NCBI GenBank assembly: GCA_038496445.1 | Contig: JALMLS010000507.1 | Location: forward strand, 715,601-779,600 | Length of the DNA: 64,000 nt | Direction: 5' to 3' | Origin: Trichosphaerium sp. ATCC 40318 | Lineage: Eukaryota > Protista > Tubulinea | Shown here: one piece after another, positions 3-63,364 of the stretch | Position numbering within the stretch: position 1 is the stretch's first letter | Layout: each line of letters opens with the position of its first letter | Notes under the pieces: generated by a model | Told to the model about the DNA's origin: nothing | The model's database searches: none | What the model saw: only the letters and a program-made list of their open reading frames with translations | Translations under genes and position numbers: made by a program

Positions 3-134
3 TTGTCAGTCTATGACAAACGATTGCTTGAGCATTTAGTATCTTTGAAAAGTATTGAAGTTTGTCAGAAGTCCCAGATCACCAAAGAAGCTTGTGAATC
101 AATTGGTATCAAGTATACACAATCTCATTATTAA
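3..134 (+). CDS. 3' end of an upstream gene (possibly LRR protein), partial
   Basis: Open frame LSVYDKRLLEHLVSLKSIEVCQKSQITKEACESIGIKYTQSHY* from the window edge; weak LxxLxxI pattern. Confidence 0.3.
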   Translation: MSVYDKRLLEHLVSLKSIEVCQKSQITKEACESIGIKYTQSHY

Positions 135-659
135 TATAGCTGTAAAGCTAACGCTATCTAGTATAATAAAATGTATGCGTTTAAATCTACTTATACCTTA
201 ATGAGTCTGCGGAAATCACGTGTAACAGAACGTTGTTAACTATGTACTAACTAGTTTATTATCATACACGAGATCTCTCGTAGCACATTCTTTGTTATTG
301 CATTCTGAAACGTTAAACGGCACACGAAAGATGAGAATACGTGTAAGAGACGTGGTCTTAGTTGCAAGATAACAGCGTAATTTATTAGTTCGTGACATAC
401 GTTATTACATTCCGAGAATACATTTTGTGTATTTCGTCAAAGTTCACAGTGAAGTCTTGGTGGAAATGTTGGTACTGAATATGGTAAGTCAGTGATGTTT
501 CACGTTTACATTAACTTGGTATACTCGAGTTCTCACTAAGCTCGTGCTCTTAGTAGCTCGAAGATGGTTAGTTGAATTCGTCGTGAGAGCGCCAAACCTG
601 CGAAATTTCTCAACTTAAGCTAAGGAGTTTCTTATTGTTCTATTTTTAAAGATACACAA

Positions 660-11637: not shown

Positions 11638-13991
11638 TTACTGTATATCTGATATTGACCCTTTAGTCTCACGGTATGGCCATGCTTCTTTGCGTTTTGT
11701 ATTAGCACGGCTTGATACCAAAAAGAAGGCAATCCAGAACAAGATAAAGAAACCTGAACATTAGGTTAATAAATAACACTCAAAAAATAGGACAGGTACC
11801 TCCTGCCAACGCTGATACGATTATATTATTGATAAGGAAACTAGGAGGAATCCAAACAATGCCTATACCACCCGAGCATGTATAGAATACGCTATCTTTG
11901 GCGACAGTGATCGTGGTGCCGTTGAGTGGAATACAAGCTATTCCAAAGTCAATTTTAATATGTTGAAAAGAAAAAAACTTGTAATTGATTACCATGGTCA
12001 GTGTCAACTTCTTTTGCTAATATTTCCTTGCTGTCGTTCAAGGAAATAGCACGTAGCGTAGTACCACTGAAGAAATAAATACTAGCAGCACCATCAATGA
12101 CTACTGTGCTAGTAACTTCTACTTCCTTTGTCCAAATTTCACTTCCTTTTGGTGTCATGTACTTTGTCATTTTAGTTTCTTTCCAAATAAAGTAGTGCGT
12201 ACTGTAATGTCGTGTTTACTCGCCACTACAATTCCCTTTCCAGGTTGAGTAGCTAACAAAAATGCGTCAGTAATACCAGGTATTGTCTATATAACGTACA
12301 AATATCTGTAATTATGTGTTTAAATGTTTTAGTTGTCAAACTCTTTGGGTCTAAGTCCAACGATGCAAAATGCAAATCTTTACTATCGTCTTCAGCCTAT
12401 TCATACGATAAGTATTCTTTGAAATACATACAAATGTACGTACAAATATTAATTGCTTTTCAATAGCATCCACAGATAGCATATCGCACGGCTTGTCAAC
12501 CTTAACACAGTGTTAAATACTAATAAACTAATTTAGTACGTACTTGACCAATAAGACTGCCATTAAACATAACATACAATCCCTCACCTTCTAGGTAATA
12601 TGAGCCAATTGACTTATTTTAAATCGTTTTGAACCCAGACGTACCTTCATGTGCGCAAATATACGTGTATGTACCATTCTCGTGTGGAGCACTTGCCATA
12701 ATAACTTTAGTATCAGAGGCATTTGCAACTGTATAAAAATCGAGTGTTGTATTAGACAACTCAACACCATTTGTAGCATTAAGCACAGCCAAGTTCATTT
12801 TAGAGTCTCGGTGAGCTACGAATTAATCAGCAACTCCGTCAAGAGAAAGACCAAACAAAAAAAGTGGAAAAGTTTGATCATTTGGTTTTTTTTTTTGAAC
12901 GTACCTAGCACTTCCAAAGTATCCTTTGTTGCTAATAAAGAGTAAACACTACAGTTTTTGCATAGTGTCACAGGATCCTTTTTAGGAAATTCCTTCATGC
13001 TACGGCCAATAGTAGCGTTGAGAGACCAAAGCAACTAGAAATACAATATTAATACTTATTTCAAAAAAAATGTGTTCCACTAGAAGTGACAAGAGCCAAA
13101 AGCGATTTAAACAGGCATAAAAAGGCGTACACCATTATTGTTTTGCTCGGCAAGTATAAGTATTGGTGTGTTGTAAGAACCACCTGATCTACGCTGTGAT
13201 GTTAGATTGAGAACTGCAATCGTGTTTAATCGCTACCTAGCGTAACCCAATGCCCAGTTTACTACATGACCTATTTTTTTGTGAGCATTAATTTGAGAAC
13301 GATCAAATAATCGTACCAAGGTTGTTTCTTGTCCAACGCTTGGAACCAGTGCGTTTGTACGACCAAAAAGTATCACCACAATTACCAAAAGCGCTATTGC
13401 CACCATCAACGAGTATGGCGTTGTTTGTTGAGCATTCTTGATCCTTTATCTCGCTGACAAGCTACTACCTTTTAATTCAGCCCAAAACGCGTATAGTACC
13501 TTGAATTCAGCTTCAGAATCAGGACCAACGTGTAGTGAAGTGCCAGTGCGTTGTTTGTCGTGCTTTGCTGTCTGCCATTCAAATGACGCTGAAATATCCA
13601 CCAACGGAGCAGCTGTAGGGGCAGTTGTTGCTGCAGTTGGCGCAGCTTTACTAGGAGTCATAGTGGGTGTCACTGGCGCTGCTGTTGTAGGCGTAGCGGT
13701 CGGTGTAGTAGGCGCTGCTGTTGTAGGCGTTGCGGTGGGTGTAGTAGGCGCTGCAGTTGGCGCAGCTTTACTAGGAGTCATAGTGGGTGTCACTGGTGCT
13801 ACTGTTGTAGGCGTAGCGGTCGGTGTAGTAGGCGCTGCTGTTGTAGGCGTTGCGGTCGGTGTAGTAGGCGCTGCTGTTGTTGGTGAACCCGTTGGAGAGT
13901 CAGTCGTACTCTCTGGAGTTTGGGCTGGCGATATGCACGCGCACAGCGCCATTAGCGCAAGTAGAACACAAGTATTTATTAAAACACGCAT
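11638..13991 (-). CDS. Type I membrane glycoprotein: signal peptide, Thr/Pro/Ala mucin-like repeats, PQQ/BamB-like beta-propeller, C-terminal TM helix
   Basis: MRVLINTCVLLALMALCAC signal; PTTAAPTTPTAT repeats; propeller-like segments (LWSLNATIG, GSEIWTKEV, VVIDGAASIYF); TM GFFILFWIAFFLVS then short tail ETKGSISDIQ*. Confidence 0.7.
13630..13880 (-). repeat. Coding tandem repeat: 120-bp unit duplicated, built from 36-bp subunits
   Basis: 13631-13680 is nearly identical to 13751-13800; the internal ctgttgtaggcgt(a/t)gcggt subunit recurs at 36-bp spacing within each unit. Confidence 0.9.
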
Positions 13992-39311: not shown

Positions 39312-40132
39312 ATGGATAAGATTCCTATTTTACGTAGAAGCGATTATTTTGGCTCTGAATCCGAACTGGTGACGCTTCGCGTCGAAGGGAGAGATATTTT
39401 TGCGCATAGCTTAGTTCTTACTATGTGGTCGCCTGTGTTTGGCTCTATGCTTAACACAGACATGAAAGAAGGGCAAAAAAAGGAAATAGTGCTTAAGGTG
39501 CCTAACCGCTATCTTTGTACACCTTTAACTCGTTGTAGGGCAAGTATTTTGACGATGTTTGCGAGCTAATAAAGCAAATGTACCCGCTTCCGCCACCAGT
39601 GACGCTTGACAATATTTTGGCGATTGCTCCACTGGCGCGTGAGTACATGATGATGCCTTTGGTGGAGATATGTGATTCATTTTTAGAAAACGCTTCACCA
39701 TCACCAGGTACGCTCCACGTGAGATTATCTAAGCTTCAGTTTTGGGAGTTTTTTTGACATGTACCTTTAGAAATCATGTTGGCAACTGATATGGCGGGTG
39801 AAGCATTGGAGCACCTCATAAATAATAGGTTCATACAATGGGCCGAAGAAAATATAGAGCTTGTACCCGAGATATGGCGTGCGCTTTCGCCTACAACGAG
39901 GCAAAAGTTGGTCAACTTTTTAGCAAAGCGCTCACCTGTAAAAAAAGAATATTTTCGATTCGCTAAAGAAAGAGTTGCCTCATCTGATGCCTTCTACGAC
40001 AAGCTAGCAGAGTTTGCTAGCTCCAAAGGTCTCATCAAAGTAGGTAGTTTGTACGACGACTCCACAATGATTGTCAAAATACCTTCCTTCGATGCTGCTT
40101 TTCACTTTGAGCCCTTTTTGGGTGAGCCATAA
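39312..40132 (+). CDS. BTB/POZ domain protein
   Basis: LVTLRVEGRDIFAHSLVLTMWSPVFGSML..DMKEG..KEIVL; NILAIAPLAREY. Confidence 0.85.
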
Positions 40133-40693
40133 TAGGCTAAGTAAACCCACACTGTGAACCACTATGTAATAAAAAGTTGTACCAGCGCTTTTGTCTGTTT
40201 GTCTATCCTTACGCTATTTCTCTATTTGTGGACCGCAGACTACAACTTTGCTTCGCTGCTATGAAATAGCTTCACCAAAGCGGATGCGGTCAGTCTGTAC
40301 TCCTTTCGTTGCTTTTGGGTGTTGCACTTTGAAGTTTTTTGAAGTGGACGCCAATAGCTAGTTTTTTGCTTGGCAGCACGAACATTTTGGCCGTAGAACG
40401 GAATTCTTTATCGGTGGCTGAATCCCTTGTTACGAAGAGGAGCTTGCCAAAGTGTTGGGTCTGGGTAAACTACAATTTTTTTCACGTGAAAAAATGGTTT
40501 TCATGAGACCACCCAATGTATATGTACAACGCGTTCATACATGATTGAGATTATGTAGCAGAATGTGTCGCAATATCTGTAGACTGTAAATTTTCAGTGC
40601 AAGTATTTATTCAGTTTTTTTATCGAAAAAAAATACAAGAGGTTTGCAATCACGGAACACTACAAGCAACTTCGAGATTCTGCCACGTTCGAA

Positions 40694-43268
40694 ATGCAGG
40701 AGGACGTGCTGCTATGGGGAGATGAAAACTTACTCTCCGACACAACAGGGGACGAAAGGACATACTCTAACCCTTCTTCGCCTACAACTAAAAGAATGGA
40801 GTATGGCGATACATCTCCTATCGAAATTACAGATGCATTACCCGATGACCGTTTTTCGCAAAGCAATATGGCCCCACCGCTCAGCATTAACTTTGCTGGA
40901 GATACAGGGAGCCAAACTCACGCTCCTCCAAGTCCAGTTCGAGTACACGCAGAACACCAGCGTGCGGCTTTAAATTCAAAGTACGTTTTATGTTTTAAAC
41001 GTAACACAACCCAAAAACGACAATTGAAGCAGTTTTATAAAAAAGTGTTCGTTTGGTTTATGCTAATTTCAGCCACAGCAAAAAACGAACTGCTTCTGGT
41101 AGATCCAAGTCCACACAACCTAAAAAGAAGGCACGAGTAAACAAATCAACAGTTTCTGAAGAAAAGCGACGAAAGCGAGTAAAACTGCTTGAAACGGAGT
41201 TACAGAACATGTTACAAGAGTACAATATTTGCAATGACGGAAAGCGAGTTACACAAGAAAGTCGCATCAAAAGTGCTATTGACCATATTCGCGATTTGCG
41301 CCAAAAGTTAGAGGCTCTACGACACGAAAATGAGTTACTACGGGCACAACAAGGGTTTAACGGGCCAACACACAACGTATCACAGCAAGTCTTACAACAA
41401 ATGCCTCCTGCTATGTTGCACCATCCACACCTCATCCCGGAACCATTTATGACCATGGGTACAGAGCCATTACCAATAAACCAACTACGTATGTCTCATG
41501 GCACTCTCCCAATGCCTGGTGATTTGCAACAACAACACGATATGGGTTCGCTCCCGTTCAATGGCTTGATGCTCGATCCAAGTTTGGGCACGGGCATCAC
41601 GGCCATCAAACAACAAAATCCCCAACAGCTTCTACACCTCCAGCGTTTACCCGCTTCACAAAGTAACATTACATGGTCTTCACGCCCTCTCTTTGCGTTT
41701 ATGGTACGCACTTGTTTGTTTTTGTCTTTTTCATATTTTCCAGAAACATTAAATTAAAACGGAAGAAACGTTCAATTCCTGTGTGGATTTCGGTTTTTTT
41801 CTTTCACTAATTCCCAGTTTCCTCCCTTACGATATTACTAGGTGTTTTTGATCATATTCCCAACTTGTATATTCATGGGCGGACGATACGCTCTACCTGG
41901 GCAACAGGTACTTTTTTTCGGGTTTTTTGGGTTTTGCCGTTTTTACATATTCTAAATCATCTTTGTAGGGTCTTAATGTTGGTGTACACTTTGGTCGTAG
42001 CCTTCAAGGCGTAGAAAGAAATGACTACGTTCTTAGTCATATAGATTCTTTACCAGTTCGCAAATTGGACTCTCTGGTATTACATTACTACAATCTCACT
42101 AAACTTGGCGAAACCTACCCATTTACTGGACTTTCAATTTTCCCAGCTAGTGTTACAATGCAACCTGGAAGTGTTTGCAACCCTGAAGTGTACGACTACT
42201 TTCTTTTTATTATTGACAATTATTGATTTTGTTCTGCAGGCAATGTATGTGGCCTTTTGAATGTGTAAAGGGTCAGTGTATCTTCCCACAGGAAGGCAAT
42301 GACTGCTCAGATAATAATGATTGTGGTTTTTGGATGGGATGTATCAATAAGCGATGCCAGGAATACCACTTTGCCGGTGAATCTTGCCTTGGTGACGACC
42401 AAGTACGTTGTGCCACGTCATTTTTTTTATTCCCAATTAGTCACATTAAGAAAAATACTGACGTTTGCTATTTTTAGTGTTATTCTGGCACATGTTCTTC
42501 TGATAAAACATGTACTGGATCTGTACTGGGAGCAACATGCAACCCTGACTCCAAGAATCAGTGCGGCATGGGTTTGTACTGTTCTAAATCTAAGGCAAGT
42601 TGGGTGCTTTGGTTTTATTGGCGCTAATGTTGCATCAGGGAGAGTGCGTGGAGCGTGTTGATCCTGGCGAACCGTGCTTGGACTTCTCTGAAGAGAGTTA
42701 CTCAAACTATTTGAGTACTTGTAATTCTCCTGGCCTTTGTAATAAGATTTCCGGTACATTTGAAAGTCTAATTTCTTTTTTATTGACTGTTTTTTCAGGT
42801 AAATGTGAAGTTGTCTTTGCTCAACCTGAAGGTGGCAGTTGTGGCGATGTTTTGCATTGCCAATCTCCTCTTGATTGCACTAAAGGCGTTTGTAGAATGC
42901 CTTTAAAGACTTGTAACGAGACACATGGGTACGTCAACGAAAGGTAGCACGTCCAATACTTACAGTATATTTTAGTTGTGGACTTCCTGGCATGTGCGTA
43001 AAGGGTGAGTGTGCTACATACCAAAACCCTGAAGGATGCCAAAATGAACTTCAAGAGTGGCGAGAATGTCTAGCTGAGAACAAATGCTATACAAGGCATA
43101 GTTACAGTTGGTCAGGTATGTACTTTTACATTTAGAAAACCAAAATTTACCCCTTGATTAGGTTGCTCTGCAGTTCGCTGTAAAGCTCAAGAACGTAAAT
43201 TGGAATGTTGCTTTAAGCACGGTTATAATATTCCAATCAGAAAGGGAACTATATGCGTAGCCCGTTAG
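40694..43268 (+). CDS. Membrane-tethered bHLH-ZIP transcription factor with Cys-rich C-terminal (lumenal) domain
   Basis: bHLH-ZIP SEEKRRKRVKLLETELQNML..QESRIKSAIDHIRDLRQKLEALRHENELLR; TM PLFAFMVFLIIFPTCIFM across an intron; many C-x5-C-x4/5-C repeats 42170-43260. Confidence 0.75.
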
Positions 43269-43477
43269 GGTTCCTTTCTGTGGAATTTTTTTTAAAAGTG
43301 TGACTTGCGTTGTAACGCAATGTAAACTACTTTACCTTTTTGGGTGGAGCAGTGCTTACGAGCACTTTGTATATTATGTGCTGTTCAAGATAATAAATTG
43401 TTGTTATGTTGAAAAGTAAAGAGGAGAAACAGTTTGATCCCAAGTTTTACCTGGTAAAAAATCGTTTAGTTAACAAT

Positions 43478-45707
43478 ATGGCGCATGTTCGCACTTGGGA
43501 TCAGACTAGAGTTATTAATTGGGTTATAGATAACGGTTTGGGGCCATGTTTTGATGCGTTTATAAATGCACAAGTTGATGGCAAAAAATTAGTTGCTCTA
43601 GACCGTGAAAAGATAGTAGCGATGGGAATAACCGATGAAACAGCGATTTTAACGCTGCTTTTCAGTATTGAACAGTTGGGCGTTAAGGATATTCCTGAAC
43701 CTCTTGATATGGACTTCTCACGCGTCCCTGCAGTTGCTCCATACCATCGCATTAATAATTCATCGTGTTCATACTGTCGTTCAGGCTCAAACCCTTTATA
43801 TGGTACCTAGCGCGTACGGTTAAGCCTAATTTGACATTTAGGGGTTGATGCACGCCGGCTATTACCAAAAACATTTGAGGATTTGTTGAATCACGGTAAG
43901 TGTCACAATTCTGTTTGTGCTTAGTAAAAGGCAGGATGGACACGCGCTGGGACGTACTTGTACCACCCAATCCTGAAAACTAGTTGTTGCCCACATTATC
44001 AACTACGTGTACGGTGTAGAGATTTCAAGCCCTCACCATCGCAAAAACAGGCTATTTCCAAAATGAATAGGTATCTCAATGGTACTTTACACTAACTTAC
44101 GTACTTGTGCCCTAACTTGTTGCTCAGGAGCCAAGAAAGAACCGCTTAAAAAGCCACAAGAGAGCAAGCGACTTCCTAAGGCCAATGCTACCCGTGCAGC
44201 ATTGCAAGCCATAATTACAACCGCTCTTGAAAGTGCTATCGAAAAGGGTCTCATACCGAAAGTGGAAGGCGTTAAGGTTATACTGACATACAAGCTACAC
44301 AGCAAGACACACCTTATTTATAACGTCGATGACCCTCCTGACGTTCGATCACCACACGTGTTTCGTTGTCCCATAGGTAGCTATAAAGTGAAGTGTTGTA
44401 TCTTGTTAATCTTTTTTTCTAGCAATGACAATTGAAGCGAAAACTCGATCATCAGACTCTGCTTTGTCTCCTGACGACATTGAAACGCAAGCAGTTAAAT
44501 ATGCTAAAATTTTGATCACGTGCTTACCAAAAAATGATGTATTGGCAAGAGTTCAAGTTGAAGACCCAGCCTTCTTGCACTTTGTGTTTTCTGCAAGCTA
44601 CATCGAAAAGAATTTTCCTTTACCAAAGAAAGAACCTTTGAAGAAAGAGACTGGACCAAAAGTTCTTACCGCCAAAAAACGCGAACCCTACGTGCCCCGT
44701 AATGAAAAACCAGTTGAACACGTTCCCGATCATGTACTTAGAAAGGAATGGCATCAAGCAGCTTTTAGGGATGAAGCGTATCAGTTGTGGAGAAAATATC
44801 AACATAACATTCACAAAGAACCTGAAACGAAAACTCAACCCAAAAGTTATACAAGCTTTCTTTGTGACACACCGTTGCTGGCAAGTATTTTTCTTATAAA
44901 CAATGTTGTGGAATAACCAATAAGGGTAGTATGAGCCAGTTGATAGACGTCCAGATGATGTTCTACAAGTGGCTCTGGGCAGTTGGCATTGTCACTACTA
45001 CTTGGATGACAAGTTAGTGGCTGTAGCTGTTTGTACGTTTTTAACATTTTTCATACTGTTACACATCTGATATTAATGTAGTGGATGTCTTACCTACTTG
45101 CCTAAATTCAAAGTACTTCTTTTGGGACACAGATTATAAACACCTCAACCTCGGAATATACTCCGCTCAACAGGAAATAAACATGGTCAATGGGACTCAT
45201 GGCATGGAGTATTACTTTTTGGGTATGATCTAGAGTTAACTATCGTGGTGATAACTTTTTTTAAAATGTAGGATGGTACATACACACTAGTTTGAAGATG
45301 AACTACAAGTCGAAATTTAGGCCTGGAGAGCTCATGTGCCCAGACACTTATACATATGTTGACTTTAAAGATGTGAGACACGTTCTAGATGAAAAAGGCT
45401 ATGCTAGACTTGCACCAGAAGGGGTACGCTCTCAGAGAAGTTTCGGGCTTTTACCGACTGAGTTTGTCTTGTTTAGGTTCCAGAACCACAAGAAATTACA
45501 CTTGAGGATGTTAAAGATGTTCGTATATGTCTCCAAGGTGCTGTCTACCCAGCTAGCGCGTTACCTGCTCTTGCAGCGAATTATGGACTTGACAAGCTTA
45601 ACAGTTACCAAGAAGGACTTTTACAATTTGCACGATGTGCAGGATTGCCTCTAGCCCGCGAAATAATTGTGGTTTTGGATCGCTCAAGAGTAAACATAGG
45701 AATGTAA
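43478..45707 (+). CDS. ATE1: Arginyl-tRNA--protein transferase with N-terminal SAM domain
   Basis: SAM (TWDQTRVINWV..GLG..F..AQVDGKKL..L); ATE_N CSYC, GWTRAGTYLYHP..SCCPHY; ATE_C LWRKYQ..IH, FLCDTPL, GSWH..Y.LDDKLVAVAVVDVLP..LNSKYFFWD, KMNYKSKFRP. Confidence 0.88.
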
Positions 45708-61061: not shown

Positions 61062-63364
61062 ATGTTTCTTTTACGTGGCAGAGTTATGCGACCGCATGTG
61101 AGGTACCACACGCAATTTAATTTTTTTTTTAATACGCTTTAATTGTGCATACGCTTTGTTTAATTGTTGTAATAGTAATTTACGCGTTAAAGTACCAAAC
61201 CGTCATCATGCTCAGTTAACTTCGACTGCCGTACGAGGACCCTTCAGTTTTACGGCTATGCAGGTATGGAATGATATCGCATGATTATACGTGTCTGACA
61301 GGCGATAAGGTTCGCAGGCGTACCAAGAAGATGTCACCGGCAAAAAAGAAGTATGCGCACGCTAAAAGAGGTAATTTTTGCGTCAACCATTCAGATTCCA
61401 GCAGAAGCAAAAATTTTTCTTTTGTTTTTTTTTTTTTTTTTTTTTTGGATGAATCCATTGTTGTGTTTACAATGTATTTAACAAGCGAATCGCTTTTTTG
61501 TCGTTTGCTTATAAAACAAAACCTATCCGAGTCGTTCCATTTACTCATCGTTTTGTTCATCTCTAGTGGAGGCTTTGAAACGTTTGGAGGCTGTAGGGAA
61601 AATTGACGATGACGAAAGGGCGATTTCCTCGTTCATTGGGATCCACAGTAGAGTAAGGGACTTTGATATTGCGTACGAGCACATGCTGCGTCTTGGGCGT
61701 ACTTCACTTCCGTTATACAACTTCATGGCTAACATAGTCAACACAAAAAATGATGCTGAAAGGCTTATAAGCCATATGCCCAAACGTGATGCCGATGGCA
61801 TGTTCTTCACCACCTTGCTACGAAGTATTCTCGGTTTTAAAGACGGCAGCGTTGATGACTTGGATGTGTTAACAAAGGTACTCGGTGACAATGGATACAC
61901 TATCCCGTCAAACATGGTTTTAACGTCAATGATCTCTGAGTATGCGAATAATGGGCGAGTGGAAAAAGCCAAGAAGCTTTTTAACTTGATTCGGTTTCGC
62001 AAAATTAGGCCAGACGTAATTCTTTACTCTGCAATGATCGTTGCTGCTGGGATAGAGAGCATAGCTGATGCGGAGAAGTATTTGAAAGAGATGCTCAATG
62101 ACAGGGTTGAACCAGACGTTGCTACATACAAAGCACTGTTACATTCTTATGTGCGCGACAGCACAGAGGCTAGGCACGTGTTGAATTTGATGCGAGATGT
62201 TGTGTATGCTAAGAAGGGGATTGATCATGCTTGTTTAACACGTGTGTACCTTATAAAACTTTACATGAGGCTTGGTACGCTTTTACAGACTCTTATGCTA
62301 TGAATGGAATGATCATTTTTTTTTTTTTTTTTTTTTGTAATATTTGTATTTTTTTTACCACTTACCTAAATTAACAAACTAGGTCGGCAGAGTGATGCGT
62401 TGAAGTGTGCGAAAGAAATACACAACAAACGGATGCTTCCTGATACAAATGGGTACAACGATATTCTTGGTGTGTTGGCCCATTTCAAGCAAATTGAGAG
62501 GATGCGTGGAACGTACCAGTTGATGTTGACACGAGGCGATATGCCCAACTGTTATACATACGCAAGCCTCATTTCAGCGTGTGCATCGGTTAAAATGTAC
62601 AGCGAGGCTGTTGCTTATTATGAAGACATGGTCAACATGGATATACAAGCTGATAGCGTGGTGTACAATTGCCTGTTTCGTATGCTCAGGTCACAATATG
62701 CAGCTGGTGATCCTGCTGACGTCAAGCCACTTAACCAAGCTGTAGAATTCGTGCAAATAATGAAGGACAAGTCCGTCAAATTAGATGTAGTGACATTTAC
62801 AGAGGTTTTGACTATTCATGGTCTTCTTGGTGATTCGCAGGCTGCACAAGCGACCTTGGATGAGATGAACGCAGCTGGCATTCCTCCAACAGTTGAGCAT
62901 TACACAGCATTGATGGACATTTTGTCCAAAGACTTTCCACATGCTGCACTTGATACATACTACACTATGACCAAGGCTAATATTGAACCAACTACAGATA
63001 CGTTTTATGCTCTCATACGCACCTACATTACTGCTGGAGACATGGACGGAGCAATGGGAATACACAATGATATGAAGCGGAGTGACCATTCTCTACCTGA
63101 TACTAACAGTTACTTTATGTTGTTTAAAGGTTTTGAAAAAGAAAAACGGTACAAGGAAGCTTTTCTTTTGGTTGAAGAGATGAGAAAAGAGCAAGTAAGA
63201 GTATCTTTTGAGTTCCAATCTCATATTGACGACTTGGTACAATTAGTTTGTGTTTACATTTTTTTGTTAATGTTTTTTACAATTAGAAAGCTGGCAGCAC
63301 ATTAGACCAACATCAACCTTTTGATACCAAAACATTGGACTTGGATTTGGATTATGTGTATTAA
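61062..63364 (+). CDS. Pentatricopeptide repeat (PPR) protein, probably mitochondrial
   Basis: Multiple 35-aa repeats (PDVILYSAMI, PDVATYKALL, PNCYTYASLISAC, PTVEHYTALM); Arg-rich N-terminus MFLLRGRVMRPHV splices in frame through two short exons. Confidence 0.88.

Follow-up and report, generated by a model that had tools for sequence, protein, structure and literature searches.

We identified a gene whose predicted product, judging from its sequence, is likely to be a bHLH-ZIP factor of the ATF6/SREBP kind, tethered to a membrane in type II orientation. The gene lies on the forward strand of the 64,000-nucleotide stretch of DNA analyzed here (the window) and consists of 10 exons (40694–43268), whose in-frame splicing is predicted to give a 658-codon open frame. 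We rate the chances as even that the protein acts as a dormant single-pass transcription factor with a cytosolic N-terminus, which would be released from the membrane by proteolysis. Among described factors, we found none that combines an HLH-zipper, a single helix, and a Cys-rich ectodomain in this way, and no second protein with the whole layout was present among 1.84 billion representatives. See Table 1 for the coordinates of all features.

Table 1. Features of the gene and of its predicted protein, with coordinates in the window.
Feature	Position (nt)	Residues	Strand	Remarks
Perfect 18-nt palindrome, T6-CACGTG-A6	40477–40494		.	upstream intergenic region, ~205 nt before ATG
Start codon, ATG	40694		+
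Exon 1	40694–40980		+	start codon and acidic N-terminus
Exon 2	41073–41703		+	NLS, basic-HLH-zipper, Q/P/L/M-rich linker, membrane-helix residues 1–6
Basic cluster, NLS-like	41080–41139	99–118	+	PKKKARV core
Basic region, helix 1, loop, helix 2, ~2.5 zipper heptads	41146–41352	121–189	+	from Pfam, USF2, and AF2
Low-complexity linker	41353–41676	190–297	+	L/P/Q/G/M-rich
Single membrane helix	41686–41703 and 41842–41883	301–320	+	split by intron 2; by hydropathy
Intron 2	41704–41841		+	138 nt, GTACGC...TAG
Exon 3	41842–41907		+	66 nt; remainder of membrane helix, beginning of predicted lumenal part
Intron 3	41908–41968		+	61 nt, GTACTT...TAG
Exon 4	41969–42189		+	juxtamembrane region without Cys repeats; carries first Cys of repeat 1
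RSLQ	41996–42007	338–341	+	17 residues past helix, exon 4
Cys-rich ectodomain	42176–43256	398–655	+	exons 4–10
Exons 5–10	42240–42402, 42478–42594, 42639–42753, 42799–42928, 42976–43115, 43162–43268		+	Cys-rich ectodomain (shared with exon 4)
Intron 6	42595–42638		+	44 nt, sole GC-AG intron, donor GCAAGT
45-nt intron	42754–42798		+	frame preserved if retained
Stop codon, TAG	43266–43268		+

The N-terminus of the protein is acidic (13 D/E versus 4 K/R in the first 60 residues) and lacks a signal peptide. Next comes an NLS-like basic cluster, with 16 K/R in residues 96–135 and a PKKKARV core that resembles an NLS of the SV40 type. Several lines of support from sequence and modeling indicate that the adjoining segment is a divergent basic-HLH domain that runs into a short zipper, a call that is sub-threshold in Pfam but on which the tests agree. 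The trimmed segment matches the Pfam HLH family (PF00010) at 15.8 bits (E = 0.013, model positions 4–53 of 53) and the whole of exon 2 at 12.9 bits; every HLH score lies under the gathering cut-off of 20.7 bits. Whole exon 2, the trimmed segment, and the single relative described below all span nearly the entire HLH model. A search of solved chains with the trimmed segment shows that the best match is the human USF2 bHLH-ZIP at E = 0.0014, with the next match at 0.5, and a second stretch of the USF2 alignment falls on the zipper. AF2 predicts a helix, a loop, and a long helix (helices 29–54 and 61–93, pLDDT about 90); the loop spans six residues and coincides with the conserved NDGKRV. All of the nearest 100 Atlas clusters are HLH families (100/100, score 0.80), as are about 12 of the 30 best matches in a fold search of AFDB Swiss-Prot [(b)HLH proteins, none individually significant]. 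Foldseek of the HLH model against the PDB gave no match, and an Atlas shape search with the same model was uninformative. Leucine heptads extend helix 2, a bHLH-ZIP feature, with zipper a/d positions read from the sequence as I72, L75, L79, L82, N86, and L89 (exon-2 numbering); the zipper is short and unconserved in the relative. The bHLH-ZIP assignment of the initial annotation is thus upheld by the agreement of the USF2 match, the end-to-end Pfam match, and the AF2 fold, though under the Pfam cut-off, and the Q/M/P-rich region that it placed after this domain corresponds to the linker. A bZIP identity was rejected, as the helix is broken at the conserved loop in the AF2 model; Pfam bZIP_2 matched at E = 1.2, confined to the zipper.

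We searched the 1.84 billion representatives with exon 2 using phmmer and recovered one true relative, P0002, a 227-residue transcript from the amoebozoan Trichosphaerium that shows no membrane helix and may be partial. P0002 is 54% identical to the HLH-zipper segment, and its best Pfam family is HLH (17.4 bits, E = 0.0039). The second match, P0003, is a repetitive, zinc-finger-like sequence aligned over ~30 residues and was judged spurious. No contig encoding P0002 is on record, and a metagenome scan with the HLH alignment gave 600 pattern matches, 0 of which were confirmed. A two-sequence profile found nothing significant among solved chains, and neither did the P0002 HLH alone. The residues that usually read the E-box are His5, Glu9, and Arg13. 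When the protein is aligned to USF2 and to the Pfam model, Glu9 is retained, as is the Arg12-13 pair, His5 is replaced by Ser, and the neighboring Arg10 is replaced by Glu. The basic region (SEEKRRKRV) contains no Tyr, consistent with the absence of the SREBP Tyr claimed previously.

Hydropathy analysis indicates a single membrane helix. The Kyte-Doolittle (KD) value over 19 residues is 2.33 for the helix and 0.91 for the next best segment of the protein; just one segment thus exceeds 1.0, in agreement with the single TM proposed initially. An N-in helix followed by a lumenal domain, the topology of the ATF6/CREB3 type, is predicted, as the strongly hydrophobic segment is alone, no signal peptide precedes it, and there is 1 Cys in the 300 residues ahead of the helix versus 36 after it. 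Pro313 sits mid-helix. The Pro-bearing helix had been read as a hint of S2P cleavage. Membrane helices often carry a Pro in their middle. According to a review of plant membrane-bound factors, helix-breaking motifs are no commoner in these than in other membrane proteins (PMC9237531). RSLQ, claimed as an S1P-like site, is present beyond the helix, and two other juxtamembrane motifs of the S1P-like forms R-x-x-L or R-x-L-x occur, RYAL (residues 321–324) and RKLD (residues 359–362). However, such a motif is no commoner than chance, as 27% of random 40-residue stretches with the same composition contain R-x-[LVI]-x, and 64% of shuffled versions of residues 322–361 do. To our knowledge, Gln is absent from the P1 residues of known S1P sites. 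The claim of S1P and then S2P cleavage is built on short motifs whose occurrence is at chance level. SPP/SPPL-type proteases likewise cut N-in helices and are equally possible candidates for the release cut. Exon 4 (residues 329–401) contains an NLT sequon and gave no family match and no match among solved chains.

The protein extends 337 residues beyond the helix, 258 of which make up the Cys-rich portion. This ectodomain has 36 Cys (14%), an even number, arranged in about eight 4-Cys units with the pattern C-x5-C-x5-C-x4-C. The Cys-rich repeats described previously are therefore present, at a length of 258 residues and not the ~300 claimed. With 36 Cys, the C-terminal part is unlikely to be cytosolic; on sequence grounds, its folding would have to take place in the ER lumen or extracellularly. 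Weak Pfam matches are DUF7107 (E = 0.016, 16 bits versus a cut-off of 24.6) and EB (E = 0.035–0.08, under its cut-off). Two separate exons led to the same Dickkopf_N/DUF7107/EB Atlas clusters with scores of 0.88–0.90, which we treat as leads. A search of solved chains with the ectodomain exons gave no relative, AF2 of exon 5 alone gave no usable model (pLDDT 50), and a MAFFT alignment of the Cys-rich exons was too poor for use as an MSA.

In the proposed mechanism, the HLH-zipper would mediate dimerization. A signal at the Cys-rich domain (a ligand, the redox state, or the folding state) would cause a protease to trim the ectodomain, with RSLQ as one candidate cleavage site. An intramembrane protease tolerant of N-in helices, of the S2P or SPP/SPPL type, would then free the N-terminal ~300 residues, and the released fragment would enter the nucleus via the NLS and bind E-box-like DNA. 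The domain order fits the one-component receptor-transcription factor of the initial annotation, but the S1P/S2P motifs through which it was to be activated are at chance level. Against a dormant transcription factor stand the replaced His5 and Arg10, the sub-cut-off HLH, and a lone relative without a membrane helix. A more specific version, which we regard as doubtful, is a one-component receptor-transcription factor that arose independently in an amoeba-like eukaryote. Its Dickkopf/EB-like array of Cys repeats would bind a lumenal or extracellular ligand or sense redox state, and a USF-like bHLH-zipper, released by shedding and intramembrane cleavage, would move to the nucleus and act on CACGTG. 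CACGTG is four-fold enriched in the window and lies within the palindrome in the gene's own promoter, a putative E-box-type site. The upstream intergenic region is 561 nt long.

A different possibility is that the protein never leaves the membrane. It would then be a permanent membrane or surface protein with Cys repeats for adhesion or ligand binding, and its cytosolic HLH-zipper would merely dimerize or trap partners, for example keeping soluble HLH proteins, such as a P0002-like paralogue, from the nucleus. Several Pfam coiled-coil families match the segment as well as HLH does (e.g., ZapB at E = 8.9e-5), the basic region is atypical at the His5 and Arg10 positions, and no cleavage site rises above chance. 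However, we consider this unlikely, as the lone relative shares the basic cluster with Glu9 and Arg12-13 unchanged (SEEKRRKRVK), and a pure anchor would have no need of an acidic N-terminus or an SV40-like NLS.

The remaining alternatives concern how the gene is read. All of the nine predicted introns except the GC-AG intron 6 have GT-AG ends. The donor motif GTACGY shows a 3-fold enrichment across the window (115 versus 38 ± 6), and inside the gene it occurs just four times, each time as a predicted donor (introns 1, 2, 5, and 8). The GC content is 44.6% in exons versus 32.3% in introns, retention of eight of the nine introns would lead to a stop or a frameshift, and the Cys spacing becomes regular across five splice junctions only with the predicted introns removed. 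Both introns named in the initial annotation, 2 and 3, are present with splice signals in the sequence, and its joining of the bHLH-ZIP to the Cys-rich part by in-frame splicing holds in the predicted frame, which is open over nine junctions. Database searches were run exon by exon. Downstream, an AATAAA (43392–43397, + strand) lies 124 nt past the stop codon and 14 nt ahead of 43406, where the next gene, a SAM-like ORF, has its ATG. Searches with three neighboring genes gave no close relatives, exact look-ups of two ORFs of the window returned no entry, and Rfam gave no match.

Release could instead occur at the RNA level, with retention of intron 2 or polyadenylation within it giving an HLH protein without a proper helix or ectodomain and the spliced form serving as a reserve or in another role. 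A retained intron 2 would reach a stop at 41755–41757, 17 codons past the exon 2/intron 2 boundary, an ATTAAA hexamer overlaps this stop, and the read-through tail has only weak hydrophobicity (KD 1.29) and carries a central Arg. Alternative transcripts dropping the membrane helix are known in plant membrane-bound factors (PMC9237531). However, intron 2 pairs the genome's preferred GTACGY donor with an AG acceptor and a tract rich in pyrimidines, and such hexamers arise by chance in AT-rich introns; we find this reading improbable.

We also considered whether the locus encodes two products, a separate HLH protein and a secreted or signal-anchored Cys-rich protein started internally in exon 2, for example at Met306. 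This Met is the last codon of exon 2; the next 14 residues are hydrophobic or small and lead to an Arg, a pattern resembling a signal peptide, and several in-frame Met codons are present in the linker. However, the hydrophobic run starts six residues ahead of Met306, a promoter would be required within a continuous 210-codon exon, and neither intron 2 nor exon 3 offers a separate first exon or a usable ATG, which makes two products quite unlikely. Within exon 2, no in-frame ATG lies ahead of helix 1, so the basic region depends on exon 1 for its start codon. Exon 3 must join exon 2, as no ATG precedes its hydrophobic stretch and none was seen by eye in intron 2. The membrane helix begins in exon 2, the same exon as the HLH, and the disulfide-rich half has no upstream ATG or hydrophobic segment of its own. 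A separate gene beginning in intron 2 or exon 3 was rejected, as no usable ATG is present there, and direct splicing of exon 1 to exon 3 was rejected, as a stop is reached after three codons. Finally, a gene-model artefact or decaying gene, whose in-frame exon chain would not be expressed as such, is very improbable: the protein is absent from protein collections, one 44-nt intron is GC-AG, and a 45-nt intron would stay in frame if retained, but 658 codons are open over nine junctions, the splice signals agree with the genome's own enriched donor, splicing restores the repeat register, and the ectodomain Cys count is even.

As a membrane-tethered factor, the protein can be compared with several known systems. 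ATF6/CREB3-OASIS and plant bZIP17/bZIP28 are released by S1P and then by S2P. They have the same order of an activation region, a basic DNA-binding/dimerization region, a linker, an N-in helix, and a lumenal sensor, and are described as classes of membrane-bound factors (PMC13294678, PMC9237531). However, the DNA-binding domain here is an HLH-zipper and theirs is a bZIP, the lumenal domain here is an unrelated 36-Cys repeat array, and the S1P-like motif here is at chance level; our sequence searches turned up no homology to these families. SREBP and fungal Sre1 are likewise membrane-tethered bHLH-zippers with an acidic N-terminus, and in vertebrates an HLH with a membrane helix is rare, essentially limited to the SREBPs (PMC13294678). 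Unlike SREBP, which has a two-helix hairpin and a cytosolic SCAP-binding domain, our protein has one helix and a predicted lumenal Cys-rich C-terminus, and it lacks the basic-region Tyr, with USF2, not SREBP, as its best solved relative. The earlier proposal of a single TM and a disulfide-rich ectodomain in place of the SCAP-binding tail fits the one segment above KD 1.0 and the 36 Cys. Membership in the SREBP family was rejected (no Tyr, one helix, no regulatory tail).

Plant tail-anchored bHLHs also combine a bHLH with a single membrane helix but, as far as is known, have little or nothing past it, whereas 337 residues follow it here, and homology is limited to the HLH class. Examples are GmbHLHm1/SAT1, MtbHLHm1;1, and the predicted AtbHLH035, with one C-terminal-side membrane helix (PMC9237531, PMC10532333). 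USF1/USF2 is the closest solved sequence over the basic-HLH and zipper and shares Glu9 and Arg12-13; however, USF is a soluble CACGTG binder, and our protein has low identity to it and differs from it at His5 and Arg10. Notch also has many small Cys-rich ectodomain repeats and a nuclear effector across one helix, but it is type I and not itself a DNA binder. The example of MrfA indicates that membrane-tethered factors occur in Amoebozoa (PMC3828593); MYRF self-cleaves by a phage tailspike-like domain, which is absent here. Dickkopf_N/EB/DUF7107 repeats are likewise short units with regular Cys, often with G-x-x-C and K-G-x-C, but all Pfam scores here are sub-threshold and there is no solved relative.

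Membrane-tethered transcription factors are few, and the bHLH ones in the literature searched are the SREBPs, with their hairpin and sterol sensing, and the plant tail-anchored bHLHs. If the reading as a dormant membrane-tethered factor is true, the design of a sensor domain, one helix, and a DNA binder would have re-arisen from different parts, far from animals and plants. It would also provide a simple, genetically testable path linking transcription to a lumenal or extracellular cue, and it bears on the evolutionary exchange of DNA-binding domains among membrane-tethered factors.

The gene under study is predicted, from translation of the 40000-44000 region, to comprise ten exons that join into a single open frame of 658 codons.

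Predicted exons of the gene for the proposed HLH-zipper protein with a Cys-rich ectodomain
Exon	Coordinates	Strand
exon 1	40694-40980	+
exon 2	41073-41703	+
exon 3	41842-41907	+
exon 4	41969-42189	+
exon 5	42240-42402	+
exon 6	42478-42594	+
exon 7	42639-42753	+
exon 8	42799-42928	+
exon 9	42976-43115	+
exon 10	43162-43268	+

The nine predicted introns range from 44 to 138 nt and include both of those named in the initial annotation, which are present as described. Eight are GT-AG introns and one (42595-42638) is GC-AG with a classical GCAAGT donor. The window contains 115 copies of the motif GTACGY, versus 38 +/- 6 in shuffles; inside the gene it matches at just four places, all predicted donors (introns 1, 2, 5, and 8). 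With this window-wide, three-fold enrichment coinciding with predicted intron starts, the genome seems to prefer GTACGY over GTAAGT as its 5' splice site. Exons have a GC content of 44.6% versus 32.3% for introns, and retention of any intron would introduce a stop or frameshift in all cases except the 45-nt intron 7. Furthermore, five 4-Cys units show regular Cys spacing solely once a predicted intron is removed. The introns are likely real, given the donor consensus, the GC contrast, the retention test, and the restored repeat register. Intron 7 (42754-42798) is in frame and lacks a stop; its retention would add 15 mostly hydrophobic residues within one Cys unit. The last intron has two in-frame AG acceptors 12 nt apart: the proximal one (43162) preserves Cys625 and leaves 36 Cys, an even number, and the distal one (43174) would remove four residues including Cys625.

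Exon 2 as a whole matches Pfam HLH only at E=0.099 and USF2 at E=0.05. Trimmed to 79 aa, it matches Pfam HLH at E=0.013 (model positions 4-53 of 53) and the USF2 bHLH-ZIP at E=0.0014; the second-ranked solved chain has E=0.5. An exhaustive phmmer search of exon 2 against 1.84 billion representatives returned one true relative, P0002, a 227-aa protein of the amoebozoan Trichosphaerium sp. ATCC 40318, found in transcriptome MMETSP0405. P0002 is 54% identical across the basic-HLH block, where SEEKRRKRVK and NDGKRVTQE are unchanged, and its top-scoring Pfam family is HLH (E=0.0039, positions 2-53). AF2, using a two-sequence alignment, gave helices at 29-54 and 61-93 (pLDDT ~90) joined by a six-residue loop. 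The nearest Atlas clusters are HLH families in 100 of 100 cases at a lead-level score of 0.80. Among the top 30 AFDB Swiss-Prot matches, about 12 are (b)HLH proteins, with no single one reaching significance. We consider an HLH fold for this segment highly probable, and predicted sequence-specific DNA binding less so. The basic region retains Glu9 and Arg12-13, has Ser for His5 and Glu for Arg10, and, as the initial annotation observed, lacks Tyr. Helix 2 extends into a zipper of ~2.5 heptads with Asn at one 'a' position. Preceding the basic region is a cluster of K/R residues around a PKKKARV core, and residues 1-60 are strongly acidic (13 D/E versus 4 K/R).

Residues 301-320 have a Kyte-Doolittle value of 2.33, versus at most 0.91 in the rest of the protein, and the N-terminus is hydrophilic. 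There is one Cys in the 300 aa before this helix versus 36, an even number, in the 337 aa beyond it, and the C-terminal part carries two N-x-S/T sequons. Hydropathy, Cys distribution, and sequons point to a predicted type II topology (N-in/C-out). The helix-proximal 77 aa contain no Cys repeats and match no family; beyond them are about eight Cys units, mostly C-x5-C-x5-C-x4-C, often with G-x-x-C in front and K-G-x-C at the end. Pfam matches to the ectodomain are all sub-threshold (DUF7107, 0.016; EB, 0.035-0.08), and two separate ectodomain exons converge on one set of Atlas clusters that carry Dickkopf_N/DUF7107/EB annotation (scores 0.88-0.90). A search of solved chains found no relative of the ectodomain exons, and AF2 on exon 5 gave an unusable model. 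From its sequence, the ectodomain clearly appears to belong to the class of small disulfide repeats.

A 36-Cys domain needs ER entry, and residues 301-320 are the sole hydrophobic segment upstream of it. The first six residues of this helix are encoded at the end of exon 2, which also encodes the HLH. No ATG precedes the hydrophobic stretch in exon 3, and none was seen in intron 2 by inspection. Together, these features argue that the two halves form one protein. Exon 2 in turn requires exon 1, since it lacks an in-frame ATG ahead of helix 1, and a stop just upstream closes the frame. The predicted gene structure leaves only two ways to split the halves: transcription would have to begin within the 210-codon exon 2, or intron 2 would have to be read through to its stop at 41755-41757. 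We keep both as rivals to a single protein. Splicing of exon 1 directly to exon 3 meets a stop and was rejected.

N-in helices are substrates of S2P and SPP/SPPL proteases, not of rhomboids or gamma-secretase, so the predicted topology would narrow the candidates to S2P or SPP/SPPL without choosing between them. The RSLQ site proposed in the initial annotation is present 17 residues past the helix, and RYAL and RKLD are close by. Such motifs fit S1P/S2P processing but do not count as evidence of it, as R-x-[LVI]-x occurs at chance level, in 27% of random 40-aa stretches of the same composition and 64% of shuffles of residues 322-361. In plant membrane-bound factors, helix-breaking motifs are no commoner than in other membrane proteins (review, PMC9237531).

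The gene lies between an upstream neighbour ending at 40132 and a downstream one starting at 43406. Only 137 nt separate the stop codon from the next ATG (43269-43406), and AATAAA lies 14 nt ahead of the latter. Genes in this genome are very tightly packed; here a gene's 3' end and the promoter of its downstream neighbour overlap. Window GC is 38.3% and the gene's introns span 44-138 nt, a suggestive resemblance to the published Trichosphaerium draft genome (37.69% GC, mean intron length 75 nt; PMC10521059). No paralogue of the gene was found within the window, nor a close relative of three other window genes in the protein collection. An ORF at 13446-13991 (-) has a signal-peptide-like start followed by long, mucin-like Thr/Pro/Ala repeats, and the opposite strand carries a Gly/Ala/Val-rich mirror ORF. 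Two long exons at 61566-63305 (+) look like a pentatricopeptide-repeat protein; their sole match (E=9e-4) bears PPR Pfam domains.

The hexamer CACGTG occurs 41 times in the window; shuffles that preserve dinucleotides contain 9.9 +/- 3.7, and none of 100 reaches 41. Most copies are in AT-rich non-coding sequence (e.g., 40483-40488), and the hexamer looks like a widely used regulatory element of this genome. A perfect 18-nt palindrome, T6-CACGTG-A6 (40477-40494), lies ~205 nt 5' of the gene's ATG and is the window's sole TTTCACGTGAAA. It is possibly an autoregulatory or shared promoter element.

The best reading of the gene product is a dormant, membrane-held bHLH-zipper factor. The ER or the plasma membrane would anchor it, and its release would follow when the Cys-rich domain senses a cue. 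The product shares its predicted topology with ATF6, CREB3, and bZIP28, and its DNA-binding class with SREBP and USF. Identity as an SREBP was rejected, as the product has no Tyr, one helix, and no regulatory tail. Identity as a bZIP factor was likewise rejected. Membrane-bound bHLHs in the literature searched are only SREBPs (PMC13294678) and plant tail-anchored proteins (PMC9237531, PMC10532333); on this computational evidence, the predicted domain layout is therefore new among membrane-bound bHLHs, though of the membrane-tethered-factor type.
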